A stretch of 64,000 nucleotides of DNA from assembly GCA_907165135.1 (NCBI GenBank), contig OU015566.1, forward strand, positions 12,958,001-13,022,000, read 5' to 3'. The notes under the pieces were generated by a model. The model was not told the origin of the DNA, searched no databases, and worked only from the letters and a program-made list of their open reading frames with translations. The number at the start of each line of letters is the position of its first letter. Within the stretch, counting starts at the first letter, position 1. Made by a program: the position numbers and the translations under genes. The stretch is from Oikopleura dioica. Taxonomy: Eukaryota; Animalia; Chordata. Below are positions 31,559 through 57,077 of the stretch, piece after piece.

Positions 31559-31858
31559 GACAAAATAATAATTCCCACTTCTGACTTTCTAATAGCTATT
31601 TTTCTTTTCAATTCAACTGCAAAAATGCGATATTGTGTACTGCTGAAAATTTATTTTTTTCGTTTTAGACTAGACATGAAAGAGCAATTCTGCTGACAAA
31701 TGAAGAAAACTCGAAACAAAATTTGAAACACTTTCTATGATCTTCATAATGCTCGTTGATAATTAAAGTTCGGCCTTGGCAGAGGCTTTCGGTTCCTAGA
31801 GCAACAAATCCGATCACAAGAACTTGGTTTCTTTTGTTTATTCATTTATTCATTTTTA

Positions 31859-32408
31859 TCATTCAGGCTCATTCTCTGTCTGGCTTAAAAAGTCAGTTTC
31901 CGTAGATAACAGCACTCCACTTGTCTGCCTGAAGCGCCGTCCCATTCGCAAGTTTCTTAAACGAGATGTTATTGGTCCCCATTTCGCGCCTACCAATGAT
32001 TCATCCGATGCGTCCGGAGTCTCTTCGATCTCATAGGCTTCCAACTTCACACCTTGGCTTCCACTGTCAGTTTCCACCCGACCTTCGATTTTAATGTAGT
32101 CGCCAAACTATTTTTAGTTATAATTTGTAAATTGAACGTCTGATTACCTTGAACTCTTCGAGAAGTTCGTTTTTGCCAGTGACCTTGATTGTTTCTTCGC
32201 CATCAGTGACTACGATGGACTCGCCTCCACGTGCAATATCCCAGATCTTGCAGTACAGTATTGCAAGGTTGTCTTTGTGCTTAATAAATAGCTTAGCTTT
32301 CTCATTGAGTCTTTAATATTTTAAAATCGCCCAAATTACCTCTGCGATGTTCGCAGCGCACACAAGCTTTCGCTGCTGGAACTTCCACGATGGAATGTCA
32401 GGGAACAT
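31859..32408 (-). CDS. RPA3/RPA14-like single OB-fold ssDNA-binding protein (3 exons)
   Basis: Spliced MFPDIPSWKFQQRKLVCAANIAE-HKDNLAILYCKIWDIARGGESIVVTDGEETIKVTGKNELLEEFK-FGDYIKIEGRVETDSGSQGVKLEAYEI resembles RPA14 ([43 protein letters not shown]), alignment by eye. Confidence 0.6.
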
Positions 32409-32521
32409 TGATTGAAGATCGGCATCAGTGTTAGTCATTCTGAATATTTAATTTCAAGCGTTTTTTGTCGTCTTTCTGTTTTCAAATTTGAAGTACACGA
32501 GAAAAATTATCAGCGAAATTT

Positions 32522-33373
32522 TTACTTCTCTCTTTTTCGAAGTATTCGATGTAAGTGGCCATATCCAGGTTCGGCTGCCACCGCCAAAATTTTTGTCGAA
32601 TGACTAAGATTAATATTTTTAAATACTAGCTTTGTTTTTTTGTTTATACCTTCAGCGGTTCTTTTAATTGCAACAATCGGCTCATCTTTGTTCTCCGACG
32701 CAGCGATGACGATGTTTCCTTGGAAGATTTTTTCTGCTTGATCTTCAATTTCCATGGGCACACAGTTATGGACGTGTTGTTGTTCATGAAGCCCAGCTTC
32801 TTCCGGATCAAGGGGATACGCCGAATTGCAAAACGAAGGTGCTTCCTTTTTGCTTATCTTGAAGTTTTTCGTTACTTCTTTTTCGTCCGCAACAATGACT
32901 GCACTTGGACGGAAAATTTGAAGTGATTCAAGACCAACGCACGTCTCATTTGCGCAGCACATGAGCATTTGTTGCTTACTTAAAGAAGTTACTATCTTAA
33001 AGTCCTTTTTATTTGTGTTACCTCTGGATGTAAGCGAACGGTTTCAGAACGACCGTAAACTGATAGTTGGCGTCAGTATTTATCCATTTGCCATCAGCCG
33101 TTTCTTGGAGGTCGTAGCTGAATGCGCATCGTGGCTCCCAATCCATCGTGATCCAAGTTTCGCCCATAGACCGCTGGACATCAGGATTGATTTTGATAGT
33201 CGTAGCGAGCATTTTTTCTTTTGTGACCTAGAATTAATGGTTATTTATTTAATACAGTGATATTTTCATAGAAATTTTATATAAGGCGCGCTGCGCGCGC
33301 GATTGCGTTATCTTTTCGTTACCTTCTTCGTCTGGCGCTCCGAAACAACTGATTCGTTCTTAATTTTATCCAT
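32522..33373 (-). CDS. Orphan cargo protein (~235 aa, 3 exons)
   Basis: MDKIKNESVVSERQTKK|VTKEKMLATTIKINP..YIQS|KQQMLMCCANETC..RKREK*; in-frame GT-AG splices. Confidence 0.55.
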
Positions 33374-33420
33374 TTAAGTGTGCAATCAAACGACGTAGAA
33401 GGTGTTTTTTTTTTTCAGTT

Positions 33421-34138
33421 TCAAAGAATATAGTTTTCCAATTCGAGCATGATCACGCCCTGCAAATCGTCGAAATCCTGGGCATACTTTCGAAGCTCGG
33501 TAATTGGTCCATTCCGCGTCCCTTTATCTTTCCTTGGCTCCTAAAATTCTCTTCACTGTAAATGTATGACTGAGAGAAACGAAAAGGAGAATTTTTGCCA
33601 ATAGGTGCCTATCCTTGATCTTCTGTTTCAATTAATGCCGTAAGTCTGCTGGTCAACTCTTCCCCACTAGATAAATCTGTTAAATCGGCACTTATTTTCT
33701 GGTTATCTGATTACTTCAGCTTTTCTGCATTGACAAGCGATAGAAATACGTGAATATTCTGTCCAAGGCGTTGGATTTTTTTGCAGAGGATCTTCAGTTT
33801 CGACCACCAACCCTCTAAGAATATTAATATAGTTATTGAGGTTATCTTAAACTTTTGATTGTACTTACGGACAATATATTTAGCATCTTCAAGCTTCTTC
33901 TTTTCTTCATGGGTCATAAACTCGTTCTCGTTTTTGGTTTTGAGATGTTCTTTCGCCGAATGAACCGACTTAGCGAGTGAACATTTTTTTTTTCTCTCAG
34001 TCAATCACTTATTGAATTGAGTTCACTTTCCTCAACAACTTGTCGCATTCCGATCATGGCCGTTGACTCGGGCTCGAGTCGCGAAAGAATAAGCTTGGCA
34101 ACCACGAAACCTTCCACGTCTGGGTATGTTTCTGTCAT
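33421..34138 (-). CDS. Orphan cargo protein (multi-exon)
   Basis: Exons MTETYPDVEGFVVAKL.., KKCSLAKSVH..KFKI, GLVVETEDPLQ..CQCRKAE, EPRKDKG..ELENYIL*; splice sites partly uncertain. Confidence 0.4.
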
Positions 34139-34353
34139 AGTACTAAGAGATCAACCGCGCAAATCAGTTCTGAAAATAGGAAAGTCATTTTCTATTTTCT
34201 ATTTTTTCTTTCAACCGGTATCTTTCTATCTGTAAAGGAATTATAAGCAAGACTTGCTTATAAAATCCTTTAGATCCGTTCATAAGGGCAGTGTTACAGT
34301 TATCTTTCAACAATTCAAACGGGTTCTTTCTTGATCATAAATCGACGTTTCGA

Positions 34354-35303
34354 TTAATCCATTTCGAGTACGAAGTCAGCGATTTTGGTGGTTGTTTTCG
34401 TAAACGAGATGTGAATTTTTTCGTCGACAGTAACTGTTCCCTCCTCCGAATTTTTTGCTGCAGCGGAGAGCGACTCGGTCCACCTAAAATTTAAATTTAC
34501 TTGGTTTTATTTATCTATGCTATTTTACTTTTGATTCAATGAAAAGCTCGCATCCTTGATCGCTTTTCCATCTTTTGCGGTGATTGTCACGGATTTTACG
34601 GGTCTAGCTGGATTAAAAGTCCCGTCCAGAGCATTTCCAAGTGATTCCGAATTTGAAAAGCGGAGTTTTTGGTTACCAGAATCTACCGCGATCTTCAGGG
34701 GGAAAGCCACAGACGAAGGAAGTTGAAAGCAGTTGCTGTCGAGCTTGAATTCTCCGCTAAATACTAAGTTATCATTTTTTTTTTCTTTATGTTGCTTACG
34801 TTTGCTTTCCGTACGATGGCAGCTTGTCTTCCATTTTCACGAGAGTAAGCGGCGCCACGTGACAACTGACGAGGGCGCAAAGATTGTAATCTGCTACCAG
34901 CTCTCGTCGAAGAACCAAGTTGAAGTTCTTGTCAACAGTTACCTCCCATTTGAGGCAGCAGTGTTCACCTGATGCATTGACCGATTCGATAAGTTTCGGC
35001 GTTGAGACTGAAAGTGATTATCTTTTTATTCAATATAAAAAAAATATAAATACCTTTAACTGCGAACGTTTCGCAGCAAGTATACAGCTTGAACTGTGTC
35101 GCGTCGAGCTCGACACAAACACGATTCAAACCCGCTTCATCGCTTGTTTCGATTTTGATCCCACTTGGAGTGAAGATCATCTTAGTTTTGTACCCAATCT
35201 TCGCAATCGGTGCTAATTTTGTTCTTATTTCGACTGGTTTGTTGTAAGCAGCCAAAAACATCAGTCTAGAATAAGGAATTTCAGTCATCTTAGAGAGACT
35301 CAT
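34354..35303 (-). CDS. Divergent full-length PCNA-like sliding clamp (clamp 1; 4 exons)
   Basis: IFTPSGIKIETSDEAGLNRVCVELDATQFKLYTCCETFAVKV ~ PCNA [48 protein letters not shown] ~ VSDYEM; KLRFSNSESLGNA ~ GVKFSASGELGNG. All splices are canonical and in frame to TAA at 34354. Confidence 0.78.
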
Positions 35304-35312
35304 CGTGGATCA

Positions 35313-35968
35313 TCACAAAAGGCTTTCAAGGACATTCTGAGTGTGCACAGACGATGTAATCTCCACGACTGAAAGTTTATCGTGAAGCCTTAACAGTTTG
35401 TCAATTAGAGACGTGGCGTTATTTTTCTCCTCGAAAAGCTCAGCGAGTCGTTCAATCTTTGCTCCATCACTAGAAATTCGTCACTTTGATAAGTTTTCAT
35501 TTTAAAAAGTACGTTTTATCGCAACTCTACAGTTTAATTATTATTTCTCATACTATTTTTATTTAATGCGCGCTGCGCGCGCACTTTTACACTCAATTAG
35601 CCTATCTTTACCTTAATTGCTCGTGATGAATGAGAGACAGGAAGATGAGAAGGTTTTTCCCAAGCACGCTGGTCTCTGCACCAATTTCATCGATCTCCTT
35701 GGTGTACTTTTCTACTCTCTTTTTAGCAGCCATTTTTTCTGTCGTTAATCTTACCGAGCGAAGAAATTCCATTGTTAACTTTCTGGATGTACGAAGCTGG
35801 CTTAGATTCTGATTTCATTTGTTCAAACATTTCTTTCGCGCCTTCAATGTTGTTTTTCAAGTCTCTTCGCCTTTTAACGATATCGTTTCCGGCTGGCAAA
35901 AATTGTTTTACAATCTCGTTTGCAGTTTTCAGTCCGTCTGTCCAGTCGTATGCATTCACAGTGGCCAT
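35313..35968 (-). CDS. Orphan helical/coiled-coil cargo protein
   Basis: MATVNAYDWTDGLK.. ORF, further exons ..EIDEIGAETSVLGKNLLIF.. and ..IERLAELFEEK..ESLL*, ending 9 bp upstream of the clamp-1 ATG. Confidence 0.4.
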
Positions 35969-36331
35969 TCTGAAGATATACTCGATTATTTTTACTCAAG
36001 TTAAAATAGAAATAAAATTATCTTTTGAACTTTTGGAGTCAGATATGTGTGAAACCTTTTCAATGGCTTGCAAGTTTAAAGGTTTTCCCTTCTTTTTTTT
36101 TTCCTTTTACCGTAAAAAAAACGCACACAGTGAAAATAATAATGATCATTTGATCTTGAGGAACTTTTGGCCGAGGCAGTTGGGTGCTGAGCGTTAAGGT
36201 TTTTTTTTTTGAAAATTGCAAGCGTACAGTTTGTGCCTTTTCCGTTTATCTACCTAGGGAGTTTTTATTTCTCCGCCGTACTATAAATGAAAGAACACAA
36301 TTTAGTTTAGCTAGTGAGGAAAAAATTGGAA

Positions 36332-37072
36332 CTAATGAAGGTATGGGGTGCGGCAGACGGCGCAATATGTCCATCGCTCGATCCATCGCAATGCGCATGC
36401 TTTGTCAACCTTATGTGAGCAATTTTTGAATCGGATGAGTGGCTCCTTGAGTTCCATTTGACAAATTTGACAGATCTCTTCTTCCTGGATATTTTGAGGA
36501 GTCAAAGTGTCGCCAATCAGTCCTTCGAGCCGACCTTTGTATTCGTCCGAAGCGCGAAATTCAGCTCGCCAAAGATCGCCCAAGAGTCCTTCCATAGTTC
36601 GGCTTTCTGGATCGATTAGTGGAATATTTTGTGGATAGCTTGTTTGCGGTCGTTTGAGTTTGCTTTATTACACTCAAGCACGAAAAAGGCATATTTTTTT
36701 TTCAACTCAAAAGACCTTTCCTGTTCAATCCAAATGGATTGTTGATAATAGCTTCGTAGAAATGGTTGTAATTGCCATCATTTTGATTGTCCACCGTGCC
36801 GACAACATTCCGATCGTCGAGTTCTGGCCCTTTTCATGATTTAACAAGTCTTTTTTATGGCTAAGATCTGATAAAATTAAAAAAAAAAAGAATTCTATAT
36901 ATTGAAGTTTTGTCCTTCCTTGAAGTGGCTGTGTGGCGGTGGGCAACTCAGCAGGGTTACGAAGAACAGGTGGATCCTCTCCATGCACCTGTTGAGTGCC
37001 ATCTTCTTGATGATTCTGAGCGGGTCCATTTTCCGCCGGGATGTTTCGATTCAAGTCAAAATTATCACTCAT
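36332..37072 (-). CDS. C-terminal RING-finger protein (putative E3 ligase)
   Basis: CQICQMELKEPLIRFKNCSHKVDKACALRWIERWTYCAVCR (RING-H2-like, one ligand replaced by Asp); upstream exons from 37072. Confidence 0.7.
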
Positions 37073-37457
37073 TCCCCTTTCAAATGTCTGAATAAAAGTT
37101 CATTAGTTAAGTTCGAAATTTATCCTGGTAATATATCTTTGATCACAGTGAGCTTTGATAAGACTGAAGGATTTAAAAATTTGTTTGACTGTCATTATGC
37201 TGAGTGAACATGATGTTGTTACAGTTTTACTAACAATAAGCATAGCTTTTAGTTTGAACTTTGTTTGGCAGTTGGGCAGGGGGGGGGGAGCAGAAAATAA
37301 TCATAAAGTGAAAAGGCCGATTTACATTTCCTTGACTCACGAAGGAGAAGGCCCGACTTTAAAAACTTTATGATTTTGAAAATGGGGTTTAGAATTGGTT
37401 TTCGTATTTGGCAGTTGGTAAAAAATCGTGAGGCGCGAAAGTTTTGTTTTGAAACCT

Positions 37458-39013
37458 TTATGCGTTCTCGTCGGATTCTCGTCGAGGTCGTTTTTTGTCG
37501 CGTCGGGTCTCACGGCTGTTCTCATCCGTTTTTTTTCCTGGCGAGCACCCGGCAGAGTTGTTCTTCTCAGATGGCTCGTATTCAATGTTGTTGTTCTCGT
37601 CAGGCTTTTCATTCTCTTGTTGAGCCTTTTCGTACGCACTCATCCCGGAGTTTCGATCATCATCGCTCTCGCCTTCTAGCAATGGAGTTTTTTCCCCCTC
37701 CTGCGGCTGTGGAGTCGAAGAAGCCGTCGCGTGAACACGAATGAAACGAGTTCGTAGTTGATCATCCCATTGATCATCGCCCATTTCACCATAACAGTGC
37801 ACATCTTCGCTTGGCAGCGGTTGGGTGAAAAGAGTGGTGACCTGAATTAGTGCATTAATTACTAAATGTATGTAATACGCCGTACCGATAGACCACGAAT
37901 GCTGATTTCAATTTTCAATGGGTTATTCGCCATATCGATTGTCATTTCGATTGCCATGTCGGCTTCTTCGTTGCGGCAATACTCAGCAAGCGCTTTCGCA
38001 TATTTACGCAGGCAACTTAACTTTTGTTTTAGTTTTCTAATCGGGAAAAAGAAGAGTAAAAATTCGAGATTATGAAATAGTTTTTCTTTCAAGAGAAGAA
38101 CAAACTTAAAAAATTATTGTACAAAATGATTACACGCGAGAATAAAAGCGCTGTGCAAAGAAAATTGATCTTTGCGCGTCTCACGGTTGCATTAATGATG
38201 TATTCCTATACAATTTTTTATTTAAGCGCGCAGCGCGCGCGAGACCCTTATATTAATTCAATGCTAAAATTGAAAGCTTGCTACCTTGTGATGATATTCG
38301 CATGCGTTGAAACTCCGTCAGGAATCACTTGCACAGCCGAGTCTCCATTTGAGGCGAAGACTTTCTTGATTCGCTGTCTGGAATTTCCATCCGACATGAA
38401 TTCGAGGTTCGAAGTAATCGGAAGAATTCTAATGGTCGTAATATCGCCGCCTTCAAAAGGAAGACGATAAATGAAATTATTAACCATAAAAACGCATACC
38501 TAAACCCATTTTTTCACTGGCAGCGCAGAAGCTATTCGCTGGCATGAGTACAAGTGGGTTCGCTGGGTCTGACATTAAAGCTGGTGGCTCGCGGACTTCT
38601 TTTGTTTTCAGATAGAAAACATCTCCGGCTTCACTATCGGTTACAGAAACACGAAGGAAGCCATCAAGTGTCTCGCCAAGAACCAGTTGCACAGACTTCT
38701 CTCCTTCGTTCGCCACGAAGCCAATGAGTTTTTTAAGGTCGACTAAATTTCGTTATTTATTCTGTCTTAGTTTTCCCCTTTTAGAGAGAGAACCGGGCTT
38801 ACCTGAGAAAGAACGAATGATGAAGTTGGTGTTCTCATAGTTGAGGAGTCGGTCCTGGTGGTAGATGAGGTAACAGGCGGCGTACCTGTCTTCCTCGAAG
38901 CCAACAAAATGGAGAGAATCATGCGTCGCCATGATGTTAAGTGTATCACTTGTGCTTTCCATCAATAAAAGAGCACGATGAAATTGATGGGCACTTGGAA
39001 TGAACGCGTTCAT
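37458..39013 (-). CDS. Divergent sliding-clamp subunit with acidic disordered tail (Rad9/PCNA-like; clamp 2)
   Basis: FHRALLLMESTSDTLNIMATHDSLHFVGFEEDRYAACYLIYHQDRLLNY ~ clamp N-domain (Rad9 [26 protein letters not shown]); VLMPANSFCAASEKMG ~ PCNA [42 protein letters not shown] ~ clamp C-domain; splices in frame to the tail exon 37458-37846. Confidence 0.62.
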
Positions 39014-39107
39014 GTCTGAACTTTAAAATAGTTAATTTTCTGTTACTTGAGCTGTTTTTCTCTGTTGTTTTGAACAGATCAGCATTTTCACAATTTCTTC
39101 ATGTCTG

Positions 39108-39560
39108 TCAGTCTGATTGTTCCTCCTCGTCGTCGACTTTCTTGATAAATCCCCTTAAATTGGAAAGGATTTGCTCGCCGAGGGCGGGCTTCAACTCCAA
39201 GCTGAGCGTTCGTTTTGCTGTGTCCGCTTTACATAAAAGCCGCATAATCAACTTTTTCGCCAGCAAATAGCCTTCCCATTTTGGCCTACAAATTGTTATT
39301 AAATGAATAAGTTAGTAAGACTTACAGTTTGGAAAGAATCGCCAGCATAAATACGTAAAGTCGATAATGCGAATCGGCGTCTCGGAGCTCCTTCCATTCT
39401 ATTTTGAAGACATCGAAGCAATGATCAGCGGTCTCGCTGAACGTTACAATAATTCATCAGCATCATAAATCGATATCACATGATATTGTTCTCTTAGCTA
39501 GTCCTATTTTTGATTGACCTACTTTTTGAAGTCCTTGAGTTCTTTTAGACGATCAAACAT
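39108..39560 (-). CDS. Small orphan cargo protein
   Basis: MFDRLKELKDFK.., ..DVFKIEWKELRDADSHYRTLRIYAG.., ..LLAKKLIMRLLCK..DDEEEQSD*; lies between PriS and clamp 2. Confidence 0.4.
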
Positions 39561-39621
39561 TTTCAAGTGAGTCGTGAATCAGACAAACAATCAGATCTGA
39601 ATATTAAAAAGATGAGAAGCA

Positions 39622-41707
39622 TTAGGACGAGTAAGAAGCTTTTTTGTAGCGCTGCAAAAGAATTGTCTGAAACAGATGGACGAATTTTTCACATAGCGCT
39701 TCGGTTTTTCTGAGGTTGAAAACTGTCGGGAAACCCTTTAGGTCCAATTCCGTTGTCAGCAGGGGGTCGAAAACAACCGCGACTTAAAAAAAAAAATATA
39801 TGAGTACTTCTCGTTTCCAATGATAATTACTTACTGGCTCCTGTATCCTGGTGGACGCTAAAGGGCATTCTCAATAAATGCTTATGATTGGTAAGCACTG
39901 GCTTATCTAATTTCGGATAGAGATGTCGAAGTTTGATAACGCGCAGTGAATTTTTGTCAAGCTGGTCGTTGTTCTTTAGTCGTTGTTCGATCACATTCCA
40001 TTTCTGGTCCGTCGTCTTTTGTTCCATAATCTTTTCGACCAGACTTCTCTTGACAGACTCAGTCAGCGCTGTAAAGCTTAGCAATTTCATTATTCTTTCT
40101 TGAAGCTCCAGGAGGCCTTAATTTTCATTCAAATGAAGTTCAGAGAAAGCGATGCTCACCTTGTTTACATAAAAAGTCCACCCAAACTGTGTCGATAATT
40201 TCCTCCGCTTTTCTTAATGACGTGTGGTACAAATTGCCGTTTCCATAGTACATTCCTTCGATGTTGATATATCCGAATAACGCTCTGCGATTGTACTCAT
40301 CGGATTTTATGTATTCTTCGTCGAGGATCCAGCAATGAATGCCTTTTTTCCCGCTGAATACTTAAAAAGATTATATTGATTTTGCATGCAATACTATATT
40401 TAACGCGGCAGCGCCGCGAAATGAAAAAGGATGTAAAAGAACTTACCCCAGAAAAAATGCTTGAAACCGAAATCTTTTCGAAGGATTCTGTCCAATATTT
40501 TTGCCGCGGTTCGAAGAATAACCCAGCAACTGGAGCAAATCGTATCTTCTTTACAGCACGTCTTATATGTATATGAGCTGATATCGATGTCAAGCGTGAA
40601 CTGAACAAATATGAGTGGATAAAAGCCATAAGAAATCATTTATTCTTCTGCTTATTTTAGTTTCCCCCTTTTTTGTTCCCCTAAATTTGGCTTCTAGAAC
40701 GCAAAGAGTGGCAATTGTTTTCGTTTTACATCAGCAAAAAAGATGTTTTTGTTTTTTCAACGATCAACAAATTCTAGAATTTGATGAAGATACGAAACCA
40801 GTGCCATTTTGATAGATTTTACTGTTTTTTCTGAAATATTTCGATTAATATCGTTTAAATAGATTTCTCTTTTTTAAATAAAGGTGAAGAACTCCTCAAT
40901 TTTGTATCCTATGAGAAAGAAAATGAGTTCTGTCATTAATTTCCCCGTAAAAAAACAAAATTCCGAATTTAAAGCAAAAAATTTTAACCTTGTACGGAGT
41001 TTTTACTCTTTATTTTTAGATTATATGTTCAATCGACGTCATCTCCGGTTAATATAGAAATTTTAAAATAATCGAACCGTTGAAATTCTCAAAAACTCAC
41101 TTTTCCCGAACATTTTGAGAAGAACTGAATATTACGTAGTAATTCTAGATTCTAGAACAAAAAATGTTTTTTTTTTTTTACGTTTAACCTACCTCACGCG
41201 CCAAGAATTCATCTATGTGGATATTTCGATATTTGCCCGATGGCTTATAACATCCTCCAAGGTCGACTCTTATCGGGCGCTTCTTTCGAAGATAATCGAA
41301 GAATTTCGGCTCATCGCGGAAGATGTTTTCGTTCCGCCTCACAATACCACTTCGGTCCTTGAAACTTATGAGCCTTTTTAGCAAAGAAATTTTATCAAAA
41401 CTTACAATATATCTCTCTGGCCGATTCTAAACGTTTCGCCGCACGTAATGAACAGTGCGAGCTCATCCACTGGGCAGTGAAAGAGGTAGTATTCTTCAAG
41501 CTCCCTATCATTCGGCTCTTTTGGGCGATTGCATGCTCGTATTCCACTACTATCCTGCGAAGAGTGTTCTTTTTCGGTTGTCTTGCTATTAAAAAAGTCG
41601 TTTATTTCGGAAAAAATGCATTCGTTGATATACCTTTTGAACTTTTTTCTAAATTCTTGCGCAAGACCTCCTTTCTTCTCGCAAATTTTGTTTACAGCTG
41701 TTTCTGG
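39622..41707 (-). CDS. Archaeo-eukaryotic DNA primase small (catalytic) subunit, PRIM1-like
   Basis: LEEYYLFHCP, RPIRVDLGGCY, E|FTLDIDISSY..CCKEDTICSSCW (motif I DxD + Zn site), [21 protein letters not shown] (motif II), LYPKLD..HLLRMPFSVHQDTG (motif III); colinear with PRIM1 over the whole length. The start is uncertain (may be fused to clamp 3, up to 42564). Confidence 0.92.
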
Positions 41708-41729
41708 CATATTTCTGCTTGACTCGGGA

Positions 41730-42564
41730 GCTGTATTCTTATCGTCCTTTGAGCTTGGAGGCGGCGTTCCAGGTACCCTGAAGGGAGAATCTGTTTTTTC
41801 TTGGCGACTTGGCGAGGTGATTACATTGACGACAACGTTCTTGTTATTCGTCCCTTTTGGTTCTTCGTCGTCGCTATTGGGGTATAATTGAATACTGCAG
41901 TGATTTTCTACTAACCTTTCACCTGAAATCACTATGATGTCTGCATCGACGGTCAGACCAATTTTGTCCATTTCTTTTGCGAGAAACTCGTCATTAAAAA
42001 CGTGGAACTCGCGCTGCACTCCTCTGCTTGCGGGACGATCGTTGTCCATGCAACTAAGCACGGCTGTTAAACAGAAAAAAAAAACACAGCGAAATTAAAT
42101 TAATTTACCGTTCTAATTTTTGTTTCACAGTAGGAACAACCGGGGGCACAATAGAAGCACAGCGTTTAGGAATTTGAAGCTCTGTTTCTTGATTTTTTCC
42201 GATCGTCCTTATCATTACTTTTCCGTTTAAACTGTCTGCAGCAGTCAATTGGAGTTCTTCTTCGACGTCGCTGACTCTAAGGAACTTCCAGAAAGAATCG
42301 GCGGGCACTAGTAATTTTTTTAATGATGGGCCTTTCTAATTCACTCAATAACTTACGAATTACTGAATCTCCGATATTGTTTATAGCATAGCTTTTCATC
42401 ATGTCTTCACAAAAGAAAAATTTTCTTTCAATGTCATTTCCGCAGAGCTCATAAAGGTACAGCCCTTCATTGTGGAAAATTAGCAGGATATCGCAGTCCT
42501 CTATAATAGAGGATTCATGAGAGCCTACAAACTGAGCTATGCTTCGAAAAGCGGCGAAACTCAT
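41730..42564 (-). CDS. Third sliding-clamp-like gene (clamp 3), possibly fused to PriS
   Basis: DILLIFHNEGLYLYELCGNDIERKFFFCEDMMKSY (clamp N-domain pattern); FNDEFLAKEMDKIGLTVDADIIVISGE ~ PCNA [37 protein letters not shown] ~ GNGNIKLSQTSNVDKEE. One junction needs a non-GT donor. Confidence 0.45.
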
Positions 42565-42690
42565 GTCTTTAAAATAAGAAAATTATTTTTTTAATCTATA
42601 GGAACTATCAAGTTTTTCGCAAAAAAAAAATAAAAAAGAAAATAAAAACAGAGGGGCAGTGAACTCTCGCAGACTACATTTTACATCGTT

Positions 42691-43720
42691 TTAGTCGAGA
42701 TTGATTGTCTTCTTTCCCTTAAAAGGGGGTTAGATTACAGAGTGATGTTTAAGATTTACCTCGGAGATACATCGGGAAGATGGGCCCGGTCTATTGATGT
42801 CCTCTGCTTGAGTTTCTTCGTCAGTTGACTATAATTTTATTAGAACAGGCCCCTCTTGCTTTAAGTTTTTTGCTTTTCTCGGTTCATAAATACAAGTACA
42901 GTGATACAATACTGTACACTGATACAAGTACAGTGATACAATGGCGAAATTTTAAATCCAGATTAAATAAGATGTTTAACGCTTTTACCTGCGAGTAGCT
43001 GAGAGAAGTGTGGTCTCGAGCACCCATAGAGCGGGTCCATGGCCGGTTGGTAGTTTGAGAGCCAGTCTTATTTATCGTGTAAATATGTGATATTACATGA
43101 AGATCATACCTGATCGTTACCGCCTTCTTTTTGCTCCGCAATCTTCTTGGTTTTCGTCGTTCGAGTGTGATCTGTGACCGGGAGAACACTGTTGATCGTG
43201 GGCTGGTCGCTTGGTCTGAATTCTCGTTTATGGACGAGGAAAACGACTGACAGAAATAACACGAACGCATACCTCTTCCCTCGACCGGCAGCAGGTTTGC
43301 TTGTCAAATCGCGGATTCGCTTACGGAGTTGTTTGTTCTCCATCTCGAGGAAGCTGATGCGTCCAAGTTTTTGAGAAAACTCACTCTGTAGCCCTTAATG
43401 GGAATTATTCAGTATAAATCGCATTTTTATTTGTTCTTACCTTTCACGAGATCGTTCGCGTCTTTGTGCCATGGCAGCGACACATAATCTGCCTAGATAT
43501 AGATAAATTCGATAGTCAATGTATCAGAACTTACAAAATACGCTGCCTTGCGACAGAATGCGCACTTGATCTTGGCTTCTCTTGCTTTGCGGCATTTTTT
43601 CAAGCATTCACCGCAAAAAATTGCACCGCAGCCAGCGCACATCTTGGGATCCTTCACCGCGAAGTGAGTTGGAACCAGGCTACAATCTAAGGCAGCTTGC
43701 AGGGATGAAAACGCTTCCAT
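42691..43720 (-). CDS. RING + coiled-coil + transmembrane protein (putative membrane-anchored E3 ligase)
   Basis: LDCSLVP..CAGCGAIFCGECLKKC..KCAFCR spliced in frame (TTT|gtaagt..tag|GCA) to a heptad coil LEMENKQLRKRIRDL and TM YAFVLFLSVVFLV; further small exons end at TAA 42691. Confidence 0.65.
42886..42970 (+). repeat. Internal relic of the element's TIR (left-end orientation) inside an intron
   Basis: TACAAGTACAGTGATACAATACTGTACACTGATACAAGTACAGTGATACAATGGCGAAATTTTAAATC matches rc of 56850-56925; a weaker relic lies at 44937-44970. Confidence 0.8.
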
Positions 43721-44142
43721 TTTGAATCCGTGAAACGTTGTCGGCGGAAATCAGCTCTCTTTTTCCTGCTTTTGATTGGTTTGAAAAATCACGAGTGAGA
43801 AGTAAAAAGTCTCTCTCGATAACCTTGTTCATCTCTCGGCTCGAAATAACGACGCTTTCGGGATTGGAGTTGCAAAGTATTTTTGGCCCGAAACTACACT
43901 CACAACCATATTTTTTTTCTCTGATTTTCTAACTACTACACTCATAACTAGTTCTCATTACTACACCGCTTTTTCTAGATCAAATAAAAAGACATTTGTT
44001 TTTTTTTTACAGAAAGGTTTTATTTTGCAGCCACTTTGTGAGAAAAGGGCGCAAGAAAGATTTCTCAGACTTGACAGGAATTTACAGCTGGAAAAAAAAG
44101 ATGGTGTTGTTTCACAGCGTAAAAGTCGGTCGTTGGAGCTTT

Positions 44143-44810
44143 TTATGAAGTCCAATTCTTTCCTCGGATCTCCAATTTGCGTCCAGAAGAGCTCTGAATC
44201 ACAACGAGACATCGTTCGTTCACCAGGTCCTCGTAGAACTTTGTCGCGGGGGTGGTGTGACGAGCGATGATCCGTTCCAGGTCGGTCGCGACGCGTTCTC
44301 GGTCTTGTGGAGAGAGACCTGCGGTGAGACGCAAGAAGTACTCATCCTCTAAACAATTCGATTGATTTCGGGAACAAATAAAAAGATATAATAGGAATTA
44401 CCTGCAAAGCGGAGAGCACCACGGTTGTCGAGCTTCTCGCCATTTGGTGCGATGAAGCCAGGTTGCTGCGCAGCTGGCTCACCCTTTTTCTTCTCCTTGC
44501 CCTTGCCCTTGCCCATCCAACCTCGTGGAAGTTCGGCTGGGGGGGCTTGAAGTTGGTCAGCGCACCGTCGAAGGTCAGAAGCAGCTTTCAAAAGCGCGTT
44601 CTTCAGGGTGGTCGTTTTAGCGGCCGCGTTCTATAGACAAATTTAGTCCAAGGGGAATCAGACAATGCCACATGGGCGCTATCTTTGCAAAAAAAAAAAA
44701 AAGAAATGATTGATTACCTGGGAAACCATTTTTCGAAGTTTTGATCTTATCTCTGTTCTGAGAAAATCTAACTGAGCTGAAGGGACGCAAATGCCCAGAC
44801 GTCGAGCAAT
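44143..44810 (-). CDS. Orphan cargo exons (may be the 3' end of the repeat protein)
   Basis: NIARRLGICVP..KMVSQ|NAAAKTTTLKNALLKAASDL..LRFA|..LRLTAGLSPQDRERVA..KNWTS*. Confidence 0.4.
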
Positions 44811-45118
44811 GTTCTAGAGACTTTTTCATTAGCGAAGAAAAAGAATGCACTTTTTTTTTTATTTTGTTGGTTTCGAGACAAACAATTCTAGAAAAATTAA
44901 ATAAGCTCGATTTCTTAATTCTACGGTCAACCACTCAAGAGTACACAAATACGAATACACTGATACAAAGTCACACTAACCGAAAATTTCTAAAGATCAA
45001 TTTTTACAAAATGGGACACTTTCCCTGATAAGTTTCCTTATCAGTTGTTTGATTTTAATAAGAAGATTATTTATTACTGAAAAATATGAACTTTCAGACA
45101 AATAAAACAAGAAATAAC

Positions 45119-47580
45119 TTAATCTTCCATTTCTTCAGTCATGTCATCGTCATAGGCGACGAACATCTCGCCCAGGTTCATCGCCTTGTGGCCCTTCGTA
45201 ACCAAGAGAACGGCGAGATTTTCGTTTTGTTCCTCTTCGAGGAACTGTCGAATATTTTCAACGTATTGGTCCGAATCATTCAAGAATTCGGCGATGGCTG
45301 TCTCAACCAGCGGTGCGCCGTCGGCAACTAAACAAACCAATTAAGACGGTAGAAAAATGAAAGAGCGTACCTTGAACAAGAGGCCGAGCCCGCTGGCTGA
45401 TAACGATGCTCGAAGGGTCATCGAAACGACGCGGAACACCATCCTCGAAGACCACAGCGGCGCCTGGGCGATGATCGTGGTGGATGGCGGAAGCGAAAGC
45501 CGGGGCGAAATAGTTTCCGAAATCGGGTGAAATCGGAACAAAGCCTGCGTCTTCGCCATTCGTAGCCGTGGCATTCGATGTTCCAGCCACGGTTGCATTT
45601 GCGGACTCGTTGAACAGCCCAGAGATTCCACTAACAGTGGAGTTGGCGCGCTGCGAACCCATGCGAGCACGGTTGTTTTGGCCGGGTCGGCCAGCGATGG
45701 TGGAGTTGGCGGAGCCAGTTCCGTTGAACAGGGCGGAGATGCCACTGACGGTGGAGTTGTTTTGGCCGGGTCGGCCAGCGACGGTGGAGTTGGTGGAGCC
45801 AGTTCCGTTGAACAGGGCGGAGATGCCACTGACGGTGGAGTTGTTTTGGCCGGGTCGGCCAGCGACGGTGGAGTTGGTGGAGCCAGTTCCGTTGAACAGG
45901 GCGGAGATGCCACTGACGGTGGAGTTGTTTTGGCCGGGTCGGCCAGCGACGGTGGAGTTGGTGGAGCCAGTTCCGTTGAACAGGGCGGAGATGCCACTGA
46001 CGGTGGAGTTGTTTTGGCCGGGTCGGCCAGCGACGGTGGAGTTGGTGGAGCCAGTTCCGTTGAACAGGGCGGAGATGCCACTGACGGTGGAGTTGTTTTG
46101 GCCGGGTCGGCCAGCGACGGTGGAGTTGGTGGAGCCAGTTCCGTTGAACAGGGCGGAGATACCACTGACGGTGGAGTTGTTTTGACCGGGTCGGCCAGCG
46201 ATGGTGGAGTTGGTGAGGGGCTCGCCCAAACCGGACTCATTGTAGACGCCAGCGTCGAAGGTGGAGTCGGCTTGGTCGTCCATGGCGGAGTCGGCTTGGT
46301 CGTTGATGGTGGAGTCGGTCTGGTCGTCGTTAGACGAGTTCAAGGTGTATTCTCCCTCATGGGGATTTTCCTCGACTTCGGCGAATACCAGTCCAGAGGC
46401 GGATAAGGTGGAAATATCGCTGCCGTTGACGGTGGACATGGTATCTTCGGATGAGGACGAGTCGAGCGTCATCTCCCCTTCATAAGGATCCCGGGACACG
46501 TCGGGATCCACAAGAGTAGACTCGCCAGAACTAGTTTCTTCGTCGGTGGCGATAGAGCCATCGAACTCGTCTTGGAGGGAGCGTCCAATGGCGGAAGAAA
46601 CATTGGAGACTTCGTTGATGACGGGAGAGGGCGTGCGCTCAGGAGTGAGCTCGAACTCTGCAGTGGGCTCGTCGTTTGGAGTTAGCTCCATGGAGTCAAC
46701 GCCAGATCGACCAAGATAGTTTACTGGTCGAGGGAGGAAACCAGGTGGAGGAGGGCGGACATCACCATCGGCAGACAGGGCAGATGTTTGAGCCGTGTCA
46801 GGTTCCACTTCACCGACGACGGTGAGGGTGTCGACAGTGAAACGAGAGCCGATGGATTCGTCAGCGTGAATCGCAGAGTGTCCATTGACACTCTGGCCCA
46901 GAAGAACACTGGCGAGAAGACCAGATCGCTGTCCATTTAAGACGGAAGAGATTTCGTCGCTTCCAATCGAAGAAATCTCAGCGGGAGAGAGTGGAGGTCC
47001 ATCGGATCCAACTTGGGTAGAGTTCATTAACCCTTGGACAAGGGTCGCATTCGGCGAGGCGGTCGAAACAACAGAGGTGTTGGCTTGAGCCTCTCCTTCT
47101 TGCAAGATACTAGAAAAGAAAATAAAGAAAGGGTGTTAAAACCAGTAATATATACCTTTCCGGGAGGTTGGAGTCCGCGGGCACGTTGCGACGTTCAACA
47201 AAAACATTGCTCCATTCGCTTTCGTCGCGGATGGTGTTGCCAAGGGAAATGTCACCAAGCTGCTGCGGCTGAAGAGCGTTCGTGGCCAATTCGACTAAAA
47301 AAAAATATTTGTTTCTAGAACAATTCAAAATCATTGTTTTTGTATAATTGCTTTCTATTGCAATTAAGTTATCCATTGGCATACCAATGCCGTTATAACG
47401 ACTTGCTTAAAAGCACAAAAACCGCCATATCAATTGCATAAATAAAAACGCATAAAAAGACCATGAGCAGGTCAACTGGTGTGCCTGGTCAGCATAAAAT
47501 TGTAAAGATTTAGACTTACTTGAGGAGGGTGTTTCCACTTGAGAATCGGAACGTTGAGCCTCGAGAGAGTTGCGTGCCTG
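45119..47580 (-). CDS. Large low-complexity Ser/Thr/Asn/acidic protein with 28-aa tandem repeats
   Basis: 600-aa ORF 45303-47105 plus in-frame upstream exons (47157-47300, 47517-47580) and a downstream exon (VADGAPLVET..EMED*). True start is further upstream and uncertain. Confidence 0.7.
45675..46221. repeat. 84-bp coding minisatellite, 6 near-identical copies plus a partial
   Basis: Unit GTTCCGTTGAACAGGGCGGAGATGCCACTGACGG.. starts at 45718, 45802, 45886, 45970, 46054 and 46138; encodes STNSTVAGRPGQNNSTVSGISALFNGTG on the minus strand. Confidence 0.95.
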
Positions 47581-48116
47581 GGACTAAATGAGAATGAGGA
47601 AAAGAATGCTTATCATTTATTTTTAATTTGCATAGCATTATAACTCGAAATATAAAACGAATTTGCGCGCGCAGCGCGCACTCGATAAAAATTGTATAAG
47701 AAGTTATAGTGGATAGATAAATAATATTTTTAAATCCACTACGGAAAAGTGCTTAGGGACTTTATATCTTGCTCAACATCAATAGAGAATTTAACTCAAA
47801 AAACACAAATTAACAATCAAAAAGAAATAATTATGGTTTTCTTTATCTTAGCCTCTGGACTTGGGAACTTACTCGAGTGGTCATAGAATGACCAGTTGAG
47901 ACGATTGGGGCCATGACGTAAAGAAAGTGTCGCGCCTAAGCTGCGGATGAAAAAATTTATGAATTGACTCGTTTGAAATTGAGTCAAACACAAATGAATC
48001 CAGTTTTTTGCGAGGGGCACTCGTAGAGCCATCCTGAGCATCATTCTAGAGAATATTAGTGTGTATTTTCAAAAAAAAATAAATAAAAACAAACACATGA
48101 TCTAGAATTTTTTTTT

Positions 48117-48701
48117 TTACAATATGTATTTGTAGTCGATTGGATCGGTAGTTTCAAAAACAGTTCGATTCGAAGAGGTTTCGTTAAACGGCATGTTGGT
48201 TATGAAAGGATAAGAGGTGAGAGGCCAAGAAATGGGAACTCTACGTAAGCGCTGACACGATAAAACCCAACTAATAATGTCGTTTGATGTACCAGATCGA
48301 GGTTTGCCTTTAATTTGAATATGCATGGGGAATTTGGAAGTGAATAGAGCGAGAACGTGTATGGTCGAGGCATGAATTTCTGTATTGCAAGTCCAGACTT
48401 CGTTTGCATACGGCAAATCAGTTATCGGTTTGACAAAGTGAACGTATGCAACAAACTTATACCTGACCTCGCTAATTGACTTAGTGACATGGGTGGGAAT
48501 GATAATAAAACAACAGAATGGGAAATTCTCGGTGATATACTTGAGACGTTCGACAGTAGAGAAGTTTATCGTGATAAATTTTATATACGAAGACCTATTT
48601 TTAACGAGTAATTGTTGATTGAACAAGTATTTAAGAAAAGAACCATAATCACTCATAATCAGACGATTTTCACTAAAAAAAATCACCATAGAATGGGTCA
48701 T
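48117..48701 (-). CDS. Intronless orphan ORF; weak resemblance to a degenerate CRESS-type HUH Rep fold
   Basis: 194-aa uninterrupted ORF in AT-rich DNA; FITINF, CFII, YKFVAYVHFVKP, HIQI..SGTSNDIISW recall circovirus Rep motifs I-III, but the HUH His residues and the catalytic Tyr are absent. Confidence 0.4.
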   Translation of the reverse strand: MTHSMVIFFSENRLIMSDYGSFLKYLFNQQLLVKNRSSYIKFITINFSTVERLKYITENFPFCCFIIIPTHVTKSISEVRYKFVAYVHFVKPITDLPYANEVWTCNTEIHASTIHVLALFTSKFPMHIQIKGKPRSGTSNDIISWVLSCQRLRRVPISWPLTSYPFITNMPFNETSSNRTVFETTDPIDYKYIL

Positions 48702-51700
48702 TTTTTTCTTGCTGACCTTCGTAAAATAGGAACAGGCTTTGTGTCACATTTTTTTCCCGAAGTACTGTTGGCCCCGGCGTCGCCAGTCGGAGATTTATCA
48801 TCTTTCATACCTTCCATCTGTCGAAGATCTCGGTAATGCGCCTTCTTCGAGCGAGTTCTTGCGGGGGAAGGATCATACTTGTCAGAAGTATATGCCGGCA
48901 ACGACGAGAGAGAAGATCGCGGGGTCGACTATGAATAATGCTCCACAAACACAAAAATAAATCAGAACACTTACATTTTGATTCTTGCCACCGCCCGATC
49001 CGTTCTTGGCTGCTTCTTCCGCCTGAACTAAGCAAGCATTGTTTGCCCCGGCGTTGTCAGTTGGAGATTCATCATCTTTCATACCTTCGAGCTGTCGAAG
49101 CTCTTGGTTATGCGCCGTCTTCGAGCGAGTTCTTGCGGGGGAAGGATCATACTTGTCAGAAGTCTTGCCAGAGCCTGATCCGTTCTTGGTTGCTTCTTCC
49201 GACTGAACAACTTCTTGCTGCTAAAATAACATTTAAAACAATTCAAGAAGATCACATTACAATGGAAACTTACATTTTGAAGAGCTGGAGCTTCTGTTTC
49301 ATCGTGAGATACAGCGGTAAAATCATTAGCGACTTTGTTTTCCCGCTGTCCATCATCATCTGCGGTCAGACCACGCAAACGGGCACGTCCTTCACGCAGG
49401 TACTCTTCCATGGCTTTCTTTTTCTTGATATAATGATCAAGCTTTTCCTCACCCTCTTTTAGAATCGTATTAGGAGAGGAAGCGCGGTCTTTCTCCGAAG
49501 TATCCACTTTCTTTTTGGGCGTCCTTTTTCTTCAGAACTCTACCTTCCTTTGCGGCCTTCTCTTCTCGAGCTTTCCTTTTCTTTTCCAGGCGTTCGTGTT
49601 CAGCAAGCTTCTTCTTATTATCCCTCTCGTCATCTCTAAGAGTTTGAGCCGCTTCTCTTTCCAATCTCTCTCGTTCCAAGCATTGTTCCATTGTAGGCTC
49701 AGGTCGACCTTTATCGAGGCATTTCAGGGCAGCCCTCACGTCTTTCACAGTTTCATTTTGATTGGAATCCGTAGGCAAAGTCTTCTCGATGTCTCGAATC
49801 TGACGGATACAATCAATTTCCGACATTTTAAGGCTATAAGAGCCGGGAACAATATCATCAAGTCGAACGTTCTTCTGGGGCACATACTTAAAATACATTT
49901 ATTTAGATACTTTGAATAACAATCAATGTTACCTGGGTTTTTCGGAGCGACGCATTTTCGCGTTTCCGACGATTAAACTCATGAGAAGCAAGATCGGATT
50001 TGTTGACCAATTCAAGCGCGGTATTAAAGCCTTGATTATCTGGATTTTGTCGATCAAAAGGCTAGACAATTTTCAAAAATAGAAATAAGAGCCAAACAAA
50101 CCTTTCGTAAATCAGTGCTAGCAGGCGAAGAAAGAAAAGGTATCTTCGAGGGCAAAATACCAGCAGCGGGATCGTGAAGCGTTGGTGATGGTGGTGCATT
50201 ACCCATTGAGAAGTTATCTTCTTCAGCATCGAAACATTCCAGGTCCTATATATTGTACTGTAAAGAAAAAAAGAAAAAAAAAATACCGTATCTTCCAATC
50301 TCAGTTGAGACTGATTCAAATATTCATATCCAGGGAGATATTCAGATGATTCTAGATCCTAAGAATCATAAATAAACATATTAATCATGAAAGTAAATAC
50401 CGGATCAGTTTGTCTCAACTGAGAAAGATTCAAATAGCCGCCGGATGAATCATGCTTGGAGGAGTAAGATTGAGAACTAGTTTCATCACTCTATCCAAAA
50501 ATGACGTGATTTATTTTTTTTTTATTTAACGGAAAAAAACAACTAACACCCTACCTTCTGCATCGTTGAAGGTGCATCGTTTGTAAAAAGATGTTCCATG
50601 GGGGCGGGATGAGTCATTGATTTCTTCGTCGATTCAATGACGACGCAAGGATCGCCCACCGAACCAGTTGAAAGATTCTGATGATGCTTAGACTTCTTTG
50701 AAATCTGTGCATGCTTAGCAATCTGATGGGAAATTCCAGTTCGCCCAGAGTCGGCATTCTCTCGCGTCTTTGACTTCGGCGTCTGCAAAGTCTTCACACG
50801 AGGATCATCCACCGAATCGGATGATACATTCTGATGATCCTTTGACTTCTCAGAAGGACCAGTAGAAGCAGGCATTGGTGCTTTGGAAGTTTTGAACTTG
50901 GAAGGACCATCAGACGAAGTAGTGACGCGTGAATTAGAGGTCTTGGCAGGCTGAGTATTTCGGTTTGTGGTGTTTACAGCTGGAGTTCCCATCGCCTTTG
51001 GATCTTTTTTTTGTATGGCGCTCGTCCCGCTGGTGTTAGGTGCTTCAGTACGATCATCAGCAATATTTTTCGCGCGACGAGATTGGCTTTTCGTGCGCCG
51101 TCGAAAATTATATCGGCTAGCATCTTGATCAGTTTGGGACGAGAACATTTGATTCCAGTCGTTAATATTACTCGCAATTGAACGAGCCATCTCTTCTTGA
51201 GCAGGAATCGTAACATTGGGCACAGTCATTTCAGGATCTTGGTCAATCTCAAAATTCAACACAGGCTCGTTAATTTGCATTCGAACGTTGCCATCACCAT
51301 CACGAAGAAACTCAGAACCAATCACAACTTCGTCGTTAATCTCTTCTTGAAACTCGTTTTCTTCTTCTTTCTCGTCGTAGTCGGGCTCGATTGGGCCAGG
51401 GAGTTGCACGCTTGGATCGTGTCTATTCGCCTCGTTCTGGATATGTTCGCTCGCGGCCCCTACGAACTTCGGAGGAAGAGGAATATCCAAATTTTTCTTG
51501 AGTAAATTCATTACACGTGCACGACGGAACAAATGACGCAAATCTTTATTAATTGTCTTCTTGGACGTTCGCTTAAAAGAATGGTAATAACATAATTTCA
51601 AGTAAAAAACAATACCAAAAATTCATCGGCGCAGTTGAGGAGAAATTGATGGAAAATTTCGGGCTCCACTTTGCCGTTTTCAGGCACCTGCTCGCACAAG

Positions 51701-57069: not shown

Positions 57070-57077
57070 TTAAAAAC
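57070..57077 (+). repeat. Right target-site duplication TTAAAAAC
   Basis: Directly follows the terminal ..GGGGTACTC. Confidence 0.85.

Follow-up and report, generated by a model that had tools for sequence, protein, structure and literature searches.

A divergent eukaryotic-type primase small subunit gene as probable cargo of a 26.2-kb inverted-repeat DNA transposon

We propose that a 26.2-kb DNA transposon with long inverted repeats carries, as cargo, an intact and spliced gene for a very divergent primase small subunit of the eukaryotic type (PriS). We assign this reading a probability of roughly 0.6. The primase gene sits within a transposon-like insertion at positions 30844..57069 of the window, by which we mean the whole 64-kb stretch of DNA analysed here, and it is from this one copy that the element is known.

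Results

Structure of the primase gene

The PriS/PRIM1-like gene occupies positions 39622..42049 on the minus strand. It comprises six exons (42049-41406, 41373-41193, 40600-40447, 40360-40160, 40116-39835 and 39782-39622), which join without breaks into 540 codons plus a stop. All five introns, of 32, 592, 86, 43 and 52 nt, run from GT to AG in our check of the splice model. The coding length is divisible by three, and neither an internal stop nor a frameshift was found.

A sequence-only reading of this DNA had placed the gene at 39622-41707. The first of these limits holds, as the stop codon falls on 39624-39622. The second adjoins an internal ATG (41710-41708) and is probably too short. The open frame reaches upstream past 41707 to a first ATG at 42049, and the gene thus probably extends over 39622-42049.

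Exon 1 (41406..42049, minus strand) begins with an N-terminal extension of ~170 residues, after which the PriS fold starts. Pfam recognises no domain in this extension, and a structure prediction for exon 1 alone was uninformative (mean pLDDT 33.8). Pfam also gave no match on the opposite strand or within the large primase intron.

Family membership and active site

Exons 3, 4 and 5 each matched the Pfam family DNA_primase_S (PF01896) separately, scoring 40.1, 28.4 and 31.6 bits (E-values of 6e-10, 2e-6 and 3e-7), all above the gathering score of 26.8 bits. They cover profile positions 1-46, 47-91 and 86-155 in succession, and the match is far beyond chance. Exon 5 also matched TIGR00335 (primase_sml) with E = 4.5e-8. 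In the PDB, the primase exons found only eukaryotic PriS chains (E ~3e-11), an archaeal chain being far weaker. Here, exon 3 aligned to the human and Xenopus PriS chains with E ~3e-11 and ~46% identity, and both aspartates and all four cysteines were matched. From the tail of exon 1 through exon 6, the gene tiles an alignment of 57 PRIM1 relatives without gap or overlap; on one relative, the successive exons fall on 93-150, 153-204, 206-267, 284-394 and 399-421.

The motifs that the sequence-only reading had listed as present and colinear with PRIM1 were all located on the minus strand and aligned, in three separate stop-free stretches. Motif I (LDIDIS, 40577-40594), which contains the DxD, and the four-cysteine zinc motif (CC..C..C) that follows it share exon 3 (40447..40600, minus strand). 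The nucleotide-binding motif II (SGKKGIH, 40335-40355) lies in exon 4 (40160..40360, minus strand). Motif III (PKLD, 39905-39916), which provides the third catalytic aspartate, lies in exon 5 (39835..40116, minus strand) and is followed by a ..PFSVH motif. The acidic triad formed by the DxD of motif I and the aspartate of motif III is therefore present, and it aligns residue by residue with solved eukaryotic PriS. We take these residues to be catalytic after the published human and yeast PriS structures. In motif II, the SGxxGxH pattern is present, with a K-K pair in place of an R-R pair whose conservation among relatives is at least 90%, so that the charge is kept.

These comparisons confirm, at the level of sequence, that 39622-42049 is predicted to encode a eukaryotic-type primase small subunit, PriS/PRIM1, of the AEP superfamily. 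Its active-site residues are intact, as had been claimed before.

Divergence, relatives and selection

Set against 57 cellular PRIM1 representatives, the primase is the most divergent sequence, with a mean identity of 26% (the lowest value among the members is 28.8% and the median 38%). It covers 43 of the 45 columns that are at least 90% conserved in this set, and is identical in 35 of those 43. The remaining eight carry conservative changes (R to K four times, K to R, W to F, E to D and M to E). Because near-invariant columns are kept despite the low overall identity, we infer selection rather than decay, and the primase would be a working enzyme that selection has maintained. We consider it extremely unlikely that the gene is a decaying pseudogene or that the similarity arose by chance. 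The low overall identity would fit such an origin, and nothing else does. The uninterrupted 540 codons, the five canonical introns, the retention of near-invariant columns and the colinear order of three above-threshold Pfam matches all argue against it.

A search of 1.84 billion protein representatives returned 478 matches, none of them at E <= 1e-10. The best relatives are 54-57% identical in the most conserved exon of the primase, and scores fall smoothly. The nearest named relatives are cellular PRIM1s from unrelated phyla, there are no viral names among the 20 that were checked, and the primase shows no affinity to any single phylum. Word-index protein searches with primase exon 5 and with the single-exon element ORF at 48120-48701 gave no match, and an exact look-up of three window ORFs among public contigs gave no record.

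Boundaries of the element

The insertion ends in terminal inverted repeats of ~720-750 nt. The left repeat (30844..31567, plus strand, ~720 nt) contains 1.9 copies of a 157-nt unit, and the right repeat (56322..57069) lies on the minus strand. The two arms are 87% identical overall and 98% identical over 307 nt. Outside them lies a target-site duplication, with a left copy at 30836..30843 and a right copy at 57070..57077. Eight base pairs of it are certain; three further bases are identical on both sides and possibly belong to the inverted repeats, which gives a duplication of 8-11 bp. Relative to this duplication, the open stretches that flank the element on either side share one phase. Together, the duplication and the in-phase flanking frames show that the 26 kb came in as one piece.

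Each arm holds four copies of a 14-mer subterminal repeat, which is confined to 30.8-57.1 kb, and only the two outer ends have an exact copy of the terminal 14-mer. An internal block of the subterminal repeat at 42869..42969, ~300 nt upstream of the cluster that contains the primase, is devoid of the terminal 14-mer. A second element-specific sequence is a 40-nt motif composed of an AT-rich stretch and a GC hairpin. Its eight copies all lie inside the element, with cores at 31127, 31229, 33286, 35568, 38226..38238, 47667, 56655 and 56757. A scan for the motif gave 12 matches against 0.03 expected, and none in the 38 kb of flanks. The copy at 38226..38238 is found ~45 nt beyond the gene that closes the primase cluster, and an AATAAA follows it on the minus strand.

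We also considered that two small elements, independent of each other, might lie on either side of a stretch of host DNA. We rejected this arrangement, as only the outer ends show an exact terminal 14-mer, a single duplication brackets the whole, copies of the hairpin motif are present in the interior too and the arms have no inner termini.

In the flanks, Rfam and tRNA scans detected one tRNA-Arg, which was their only hit. A Band_7 exon in the flanking host DNA has one homologue, at 60% identity, and none in the PDB.

These boundaries bear on whether the gene could be the sole PRIM1 of the host, located in a block that was moved or flanked by transposon ends, with its divergence due to a fast-evolving lineage. 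The host lineage is poorly sampled, as the single homologue of the Band_7 exon illustrates, and this would be in keeping with such an explanation. However, the hairpin motif is shared by the interior and the inverted ends and missing from the 38 kb of flanks, the arms without inner termini do not represent two separate small elements, and the evidence for arrival in a single piece concerns the entire 26 kb. Moreover, the primase bears its long N-terminal extension and has changed residues that are invariant elsewhere. We therefore regard a sole host PRIM1 as very improbable.

Gene content of the element

The primase belongs to a cluster of four genes on the same strand. Upstream, 55 nt separate the end of a two-exon gene of 136 codons (42105..42564, minus strand) from the primase ATG. 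Downstream, a small gene (39108..39560, minus strand) has its ATG 61 nt past the primase stop, and a three-exon, beta-rich gene (38281..39013, minus strand) is the last of the cluster. Pfam matched no known domain in these three neighbours. A likeness to sliding clamps had been suspected for 38281-39013 and for 34528-35309, and found no support in Pfam.

The element carries a dozen or more other open genes. Across the ~70 stop-free stretches scanned inside it, PriS and RING fingers were the only domain matches. The sequence-only reading had noted that no large primase subunit (PriL) is recognisable in the element. Our scan bears this out, with no PriL domain recognised in ~80 stop-free stretches, ~70 of which are inside the element. 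Within these ~70, polymerases and helicases were likewise not recognised, and protein-primed PolB, retroviral-type integrase, capsid, packaging ATPase and protease went unmatched; strong divergence could hide them. No herpesvirus family was significant: DUF1314, in low-complexity sequence, stayed at 18 bits, below its cut-off of 25, and was taken as a chance match.

A candidate transposase gene spans 50543..53562 on the minus strand. Its ten exons encode 858 codons plus a stop without breaks, and its nine GT..AG introns of 40-83 nt are all compatible in phase, with no internal stop. The last exon is long and of low complexity. The gene (53562-50543) contains D / D..CxxH / E-like motifs, which we take to recall those of Mutator-like DDE transposases. 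Single exons of the gene returned nothing from Pfam, NCBIfam, a PDB sequence search or tblastn against plasmids; introns would split the domain.

Target duplications in the Mutator superfamily are typically 9-11 bp long, and 8 bp would fit other superfamilies. Long terminal inverted repeats together with subterminal repeats are a Mutator-like trait that the element displays. The ends are long and inverted and have subterminal repeats, the range of possible duplication lengths includes 9-11 bp, and the ten-exon candidate gene with its D / D..CxxH / E-like motifs is intact. On these grounds, we infer that the element may be an autonomous, or recently autonomous, Mutator-like cut-and-paste transposon. 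Of the earlier description as a DDE cut-and-paste element, the insertion with long inverted repeats and a target duplication is upheld, whereas profile and sequence searches with single exons of the candidate gene lend the DDE class no support.

Alternatively, the insertion might be an integrated virus-like element. In this case, the inverted ends would be genome termini, the primase a replication enzyme and the transposase-like gene an integrase, while the same-strand array and the shared intergenic hairpin would belong to a viral transcription programme. Such an origin is consistent with the size of 26 kb, the long inverted ends, the common orientation of all recognised genes and the element-specific intergenic motif. 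It would also agree with one of the encoded proteins, a repeat protein that is mucin-like and has a hydrophobic tail, and with the fact that the element proteins are all orphans. Nevertheless, we find a virus-like origin improbable. Capsid, packaging ATPase, protease, polymerase and integrase families found no match in the ~70 element stretches, and the element genes have many short spliceosomal introns. In addition, the primase belongs to the cellular PriS type, whereas such viruses usually have a primase-helicase.

Discussion

In the reading that we prefer, a primase carried by a DNA transposon, the enzyme would serve the element by laying primers on element DNA, so that copying is linked to movement. 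This is the weakest step of the proposed mechanism. Possible priming sites would be the eight copies of the hairpin-plus-AT motif. Since eukaryotic PriS needs PriL for initiation and the element has no recognisable PriL, the partner of the primase may be borrowed, in the form of host PriL and polymerase alpha, or may be an unrecognised protein from the four-gene cluster. A host PRIM1 is assumed to exist elsewhere. To our knowledge, cut-and-paste transposition as currently understood requires no primase, which counts against this reading, as do the single known copy, the lack of search matches for single exons of the transposase candidate and the lysine pair in motif II.

As a separate observation that also speaks against it, no replication-module partner, be it a polymerase, a helicase or PriL, was found in the ~70 stretches scanned inside the element.

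This absence would suit a scenario in which the primase is a passenger. Here, a cellular PRIM1 was captured whole and is expressed and constrained, but plays no part in the propagation of the element. Its role might, for example, be that of a spare or regulatory subunit, in competition with the host subunit for PriL. The intron-rich structure of the gene and its splice signals, which are like those of the other element genes, point in the same direction, as do the cellular identity of the closest relatives and the lack of viral names among the 20 checked. On the other hand, the divergence of the primase beyond all 57 cellular representatives and its lack of affinity to any phylum make a recent capture from the host unlikely, and full-length capture by DNA transposons has been called exceptionally rare (PMC6431247). 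Overall, we view a passenger role as a rather unlikely outcome.

It is conceivable, if doubtful, that the element is a cut-and-paste transposon with a replication-priming module of its own, made up of PriS and unrecognised partners from the cluster, with the hairpins as priming or control sites. If true, a transposon with such a module would be part-way to self-replication, an intermediate of a kind on which a review of giant transposons only speculated (PMC6431247). Our literature search found no paper on cut-and-paste transposons that bear this type of primase gene.

The broader interest of our proposal lies in what such an element would carry. Cut-and-paste DNA transposons are thought to depend on their host for all replication and repair, and they normally contain a transposase only, plus gene fragments in those that capture genes. 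A full-length, constrained primase catalytic subunit of the cellular type in a 26-kb element with intact ends and an intact candidate transposase would be a new type of cargo, and might connect transposons with elements that replicate themselves, among them Polintons, plasmids and viruses. If the primase pairs with the host large subunit, this would be a mobile element that plugs into the host replisome. The primase itself is a natural, extremely divergent PriS that keeps its catalytic core, has lysines at several near-invariant arginine positions and is informative on how much change the primase fold tolerates.

Comparison with known systems

The primase resembles cellular PRIM1 (Pri1, p49) in its fold family, which is shared over the full length, and in the order of its motifs. 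It differs in its N-terminal extension of up to ~170 residues, in a shorter C-terminus and in four near-invariant arginines that are lysines here. Unlike its cellular counterparts, it is found inside a mobile insertion, with no PriL gene nearby. In baculoviruses, which are large DNA viruses, the LEF-1 / LEF-2 primase pairs a small catalytic subunit of the AEP type with an accessory subunit that is also viral. The likeness to this pair is by description only, and no search with window exons gave a named match to either protein.

Polintons or Mavericks, Polinton-like viruses and virophages measure 15-40 kb and have long inverted ends and their own replication proteins. The element is similar to them in its size and ends. 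Some Polinton-like viruses are reported to encode primase-helicases of the AEP type. In contrast, the primase described here has no helicase fused to it, the element has intron-rich genes, and no protein-primed PolB, retroviral-type integrase, capsid, ATPase or protease was found in it.

Pack-MULEs are non-autonomous elements of at most ~7 kb that contain captured gene fragments (PMC6431247). The element shares with such Mutator-like capture its long inverted ends, a duplication compatible with 9-11 bp and the presence of foreign genes. It differs in its size of 26 kb, its full-length constrained gene and its candidate transposase, and its membership in the Mutator superfamily is putative.

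Teratorn, a fusion of ~180 kb between a piggyBac-like transposon and a fish herpesvirus, has recognisable herpesvirus genes and is another element with a primase gene (PMC6431247). Both cases combine a primase with a transposase, a candidate one in the element presented here, which in contrast to Teratorn has no recognisable viral gene. Insertion of piggyBac-type elements duplicates a TTAA target, and the primases of herpesviruses are not known to belong to the cellular PriS type. The element differs in both respects, with a duplication of 8-11 bp and a PriS of cellular type, a contrast that for Teratorn is drawn by description only.

Lastly, PriS-PriL fusions of archaeal plasmids and Nanoarchaeum, such as PolpTN2, work without a separate large subunit (PMC3973330, PMC10250227). 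They are PriS-family enzymes that belong to mobile elements or, in one case, are monomeric. Their single chain also includes a PriL-like domain, whereas none is recognisable in the primase of the element. They nonetheless set a precedent for a PriS that is independent of the host PriL.

An intact PriS gene within the insertion

A transposon-like insertion of 26.2 kb (30844-57069), bounded by inverted repeats and a target-site duplication, holds an intact and constrained PriS gene. The primase motifs claimed in the sequence-only reading were all found on the minus strand, in the order of primase small subunits: motif I (LDIDIS, 40577-40594), a CC..C..C motif directly after it, motif II (SGKKGIH, 40335-40355) and motif III (PKLD, 39905-39916). 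They are spread over three separate stop-free stretches, each of which alone exceeds the curated threshold of Pfam PF01896 (DNA_primase_S), and together they run along the profile in order (positions 1-46, 47-91 and 86-155). This is far beyond what chance would produce and confirms the presence of the motifs.

A GT..AG reading of the minus strand gives six exons (42049-41406, 41373-41193, 40600-40447, 40360-40160, 40116-39835 and 39782-39622). The introns (32, 592, 86, 43 and 52 nt) are canonical, with GT..AG exactly at the frame changes; introns in the window are mostly 40-90 nt, and no part of the window is similar to human sequence. The gene was originally placed at 39622-41707. Its lower bound stood, while the upper bound of 41707 adjoins an internal ATG; the open frame extends further, as far as the ATG at 42049. 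Counting the stop, the gene comprises 541 codons, and a script check of each exon and each junction codon revealed no internal stops or frameshifts. That it is a pseudogene is scarcely credible.

Primase sequence searches were run per exon on the predicted exons. In BLASTP against 150 PRIM1-family proteins, consecutive exons match abutting segments of the same proteins, and as separate fragments on an alignment of 57 full-length relatives the exons tile without gap or overlap. Both results support the six-exon model.

Conservation and relatives of the primase

In a PDB sequence search, exons 3, 4 and 5 matched only eukaryotic PriS chains (best E 3e-11, 1e-5 and 5e-5, respectively), apart from an archaeal chain that matched far more weakly. 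The alignments match both motif I aspartates, all four zinc cysteines, the serine, glycine and histidine of motif II, and the motif III aspartate with the histidine after it. We take these to be the catalytic and zinc residues, in keeping with the published human and yeast primase structures. Judged by its sequence, the protein belongs to the PriS family and displays every sequence-level feature for which we looked.

With identities added up exon by exon, the protein is on average 26% identical to 57 cellular PRIM1 representatives. These representatives are all closer to one another than the element primase is to them (lowest 28.8%, median 38%). Of 45 family columns conserved to at least 90%, the primase covers 43 and is identical in 35; the remaining eight all differ conservatively (R->K four times, K->R, W->F, E->D and M->E). 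Both motif II arginines are among the four replaced by lysine. Across exons 3-5 (40600-39835, minus strand), basic residues near the nucleotide-binding site have been exchanged systematically, four times R->K and once K->R. With its invariant core retained despite high divergence, the sequence bears the mark of long purifying selection on catalysis and not that of decay. The PriS fold is preceded by an N-terminal region of about 170 residues, which has no family match in Pfam and whose single-sequence structure model is uninformative (pLDDT 33.8).

Scanned in full by HMMER with the most conserved exon as query, 1.84 billion cluster representatives yielded 478 proteins at E <= 0.001 and none at E <= 1e-10, with a best identity of 54-57%. 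The scores fall smoothly, so no subfamily stands out. Those of the best matches that carry a name are typical cellular PRIM1s from lineages unrelated to one another (foraminiferan, amoebozoan, Rhodelphis, chytrid, beetle, cricket and nematode) and, judged by these, the primase has no affinity to any phylum. No viral names occur among the 20 matches checked. Word-index protein searches returned nothing for primase exon 5 or for a further ORF of the element, and three ORFs of the window have no record in public contigs. The host lineage is poorly sampled; for a divergent Band_7/SPFH exon in the host flank (16817-17554, plus strand), a single homologue was found, at 60% identity. Full-text literature searches found no paper in which a eukaryotic cut-and-paste transposon carries a PriS-type primase.

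Ends and insertion site of the element

The inverted ends span ~720-750 nt; their overall identity is 87%, rising to 98% across 307 nt. Exact copies of the terminal 14-mer stand at the two outer ends only, so the arms are not two self-contained small elements. Each end is directly flanked by the same 8-11 bases, eight of them certain (30836-30843 and 57070-57077) and three ambiguous; they are a target-site duplication. Two open stretches abut the element, 30388-30843 (+) and 57072-57197 (+). Compared separately, they share one phase with respect to the duplication, so the element seems to have landed inside a host coding exon; neither stretch matched a Pfam family. One copy of the element was observed, within the 64-kb window.

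A 14-mer is repeated four times per arm and three more times at 42896-42941. The latter lie in an internal copy of the subterminal repeat block (42869-42969), just upstream of the primase cluster, which lacks the terminal 14-mer; it may have been left behind by a rearrangement or have a function of its own. A second motif of ~40 nt is made up of an AT-rich stretch and, after it, a GC hairpin of 6-7 bp whose central base varies. It occurs twice per arm and four times between genes, with 13-nt cores at 31127, 31229, 33286, 35568, 38226, 47667, 56655 and 56757, and 24 columns are invariant in these eight copies. A search for the motif gave 12 matches against 0.03 expected, and none in 38 kb of flanks. 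The five left copies are oriented opposite to the three right copies. The motif may serve as a terminator, a promoter, or a binding or priming site.

The host flanks contain short inverted-repeat structures of their own (24463-24739, 27221-27781 and 1375-2591), in one of which 175 nt separate perfect arms of 51 nt, and a repeat family common to both window ends (2472-2619 and 63155-63303). All of these are probably small non-autonomous transposons that have no relation to the 26-kb element. The host flank also holds a tRNA-Arg(TCG) (23593-23665, minus strand) and a BAH-domain exon (22357-23091, plus strand).

Other genes of the element

All recognisable element genes lie on the minus strand, and the primase comes second in a tight cluster of them: a gene of 136 codons ends 55 nt before its ATG, and 61 nt separate its stop from the start of a small gene, followed by a three-exon gene with a hairpin motif and AATAAA on its 3' side. 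The gaps (42105-42049, 39622-39560 and 39108-39013, minus strand) leave just 55-94 nt between genes, and a pyrimidine-rich stretch ending in AG lies within 2-35 nt upstream of each cluster ATG. Together, these features of the sequence suggest that this organism transcribes such genes polycistronically, with trans-splicing.

The transposase candidate (53562-50543, minus strand; splice model checked) has ten exons and 858 codons. Its nine GT..AG introns (40-83 nt) are compatible in all phases, without a stop or frame break. Three of its exons carry motifs that may correspond to those of Mutator-like transposases (D, D..CxxH and E). Single exons found nothing in Pfam, NCBIfam, a PDB sequence search or tblastn, possibly because the domain is split by introns.

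The sequence-only reading had seen no recognisable PriL in the element, and a Pfam scan of ~80 stop-free stretches bears this out. In the ~70 stretches inside the element, the scan likewise revealed no polymerase, helicase, integrase, capsid or packaging ATPase. An integrated virus-like element is an improbable reading of the insertion. Besides the primase, the Pfam matches inside the element are RING fingers only, one above the zf-C3HC4 threshold (36335-36664, minus strand) and one weak (43496-43750, minus strand). A 610-codon open frame rich in Ser/Thr/Asn (45306-47135, minus strand) contains 6.5 repeats of an 84-nt unit (98% identical) and many N-x-S/T sites, and its C-terminus is hydrophobic; its predicted product looks like a mucin-like membrane protein. 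Two beta-rich genes (38281-39013 and 34528-35309, both minus strand) are, to our eye, reminiscent of sliding-clamp-like proteins, with no sliding-clamp family match in Pfam.

Proposed role and comparison with known systems

We are most confident that the protein would be an active primase. With less confidence, we propose an autonomous cut-and-paste transposon, probably of Mutator-like type, as what the element is now or was until recently. Most tentatively, the primase would prime synthesis on element DNA and so serve the element, its partner being either the host large subunit with polymerase alpha or an unrecognised protein from its own cluster. Alternatively, the constrained gene may be a passenger without a role in propagation; we consider this unlikely. 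That it is the host's only PRIM1, carried in a moved block, appears very improbable.

The element resembles giant transposons with cargo, yet matches no named kind. Teratorn would make TTAA duplications. It carries recognisable herpesvirus genes (PMC6431247), whereas none is recognisable here. Polintons encode a protein-primed polymerase, an integrase and capsid proteins, unlike the element, in which none of these genes is recognisable. The PriS enzymes of archaeal plasmids have a fused PriL-like domain (PMC3973330), whereas no PriL was recognised in the element. Finally, Pack-MULEs are short and carry gene fragments (PMC6431247), whereas this element extends over 26.2 kb and carries an intact primase gene.
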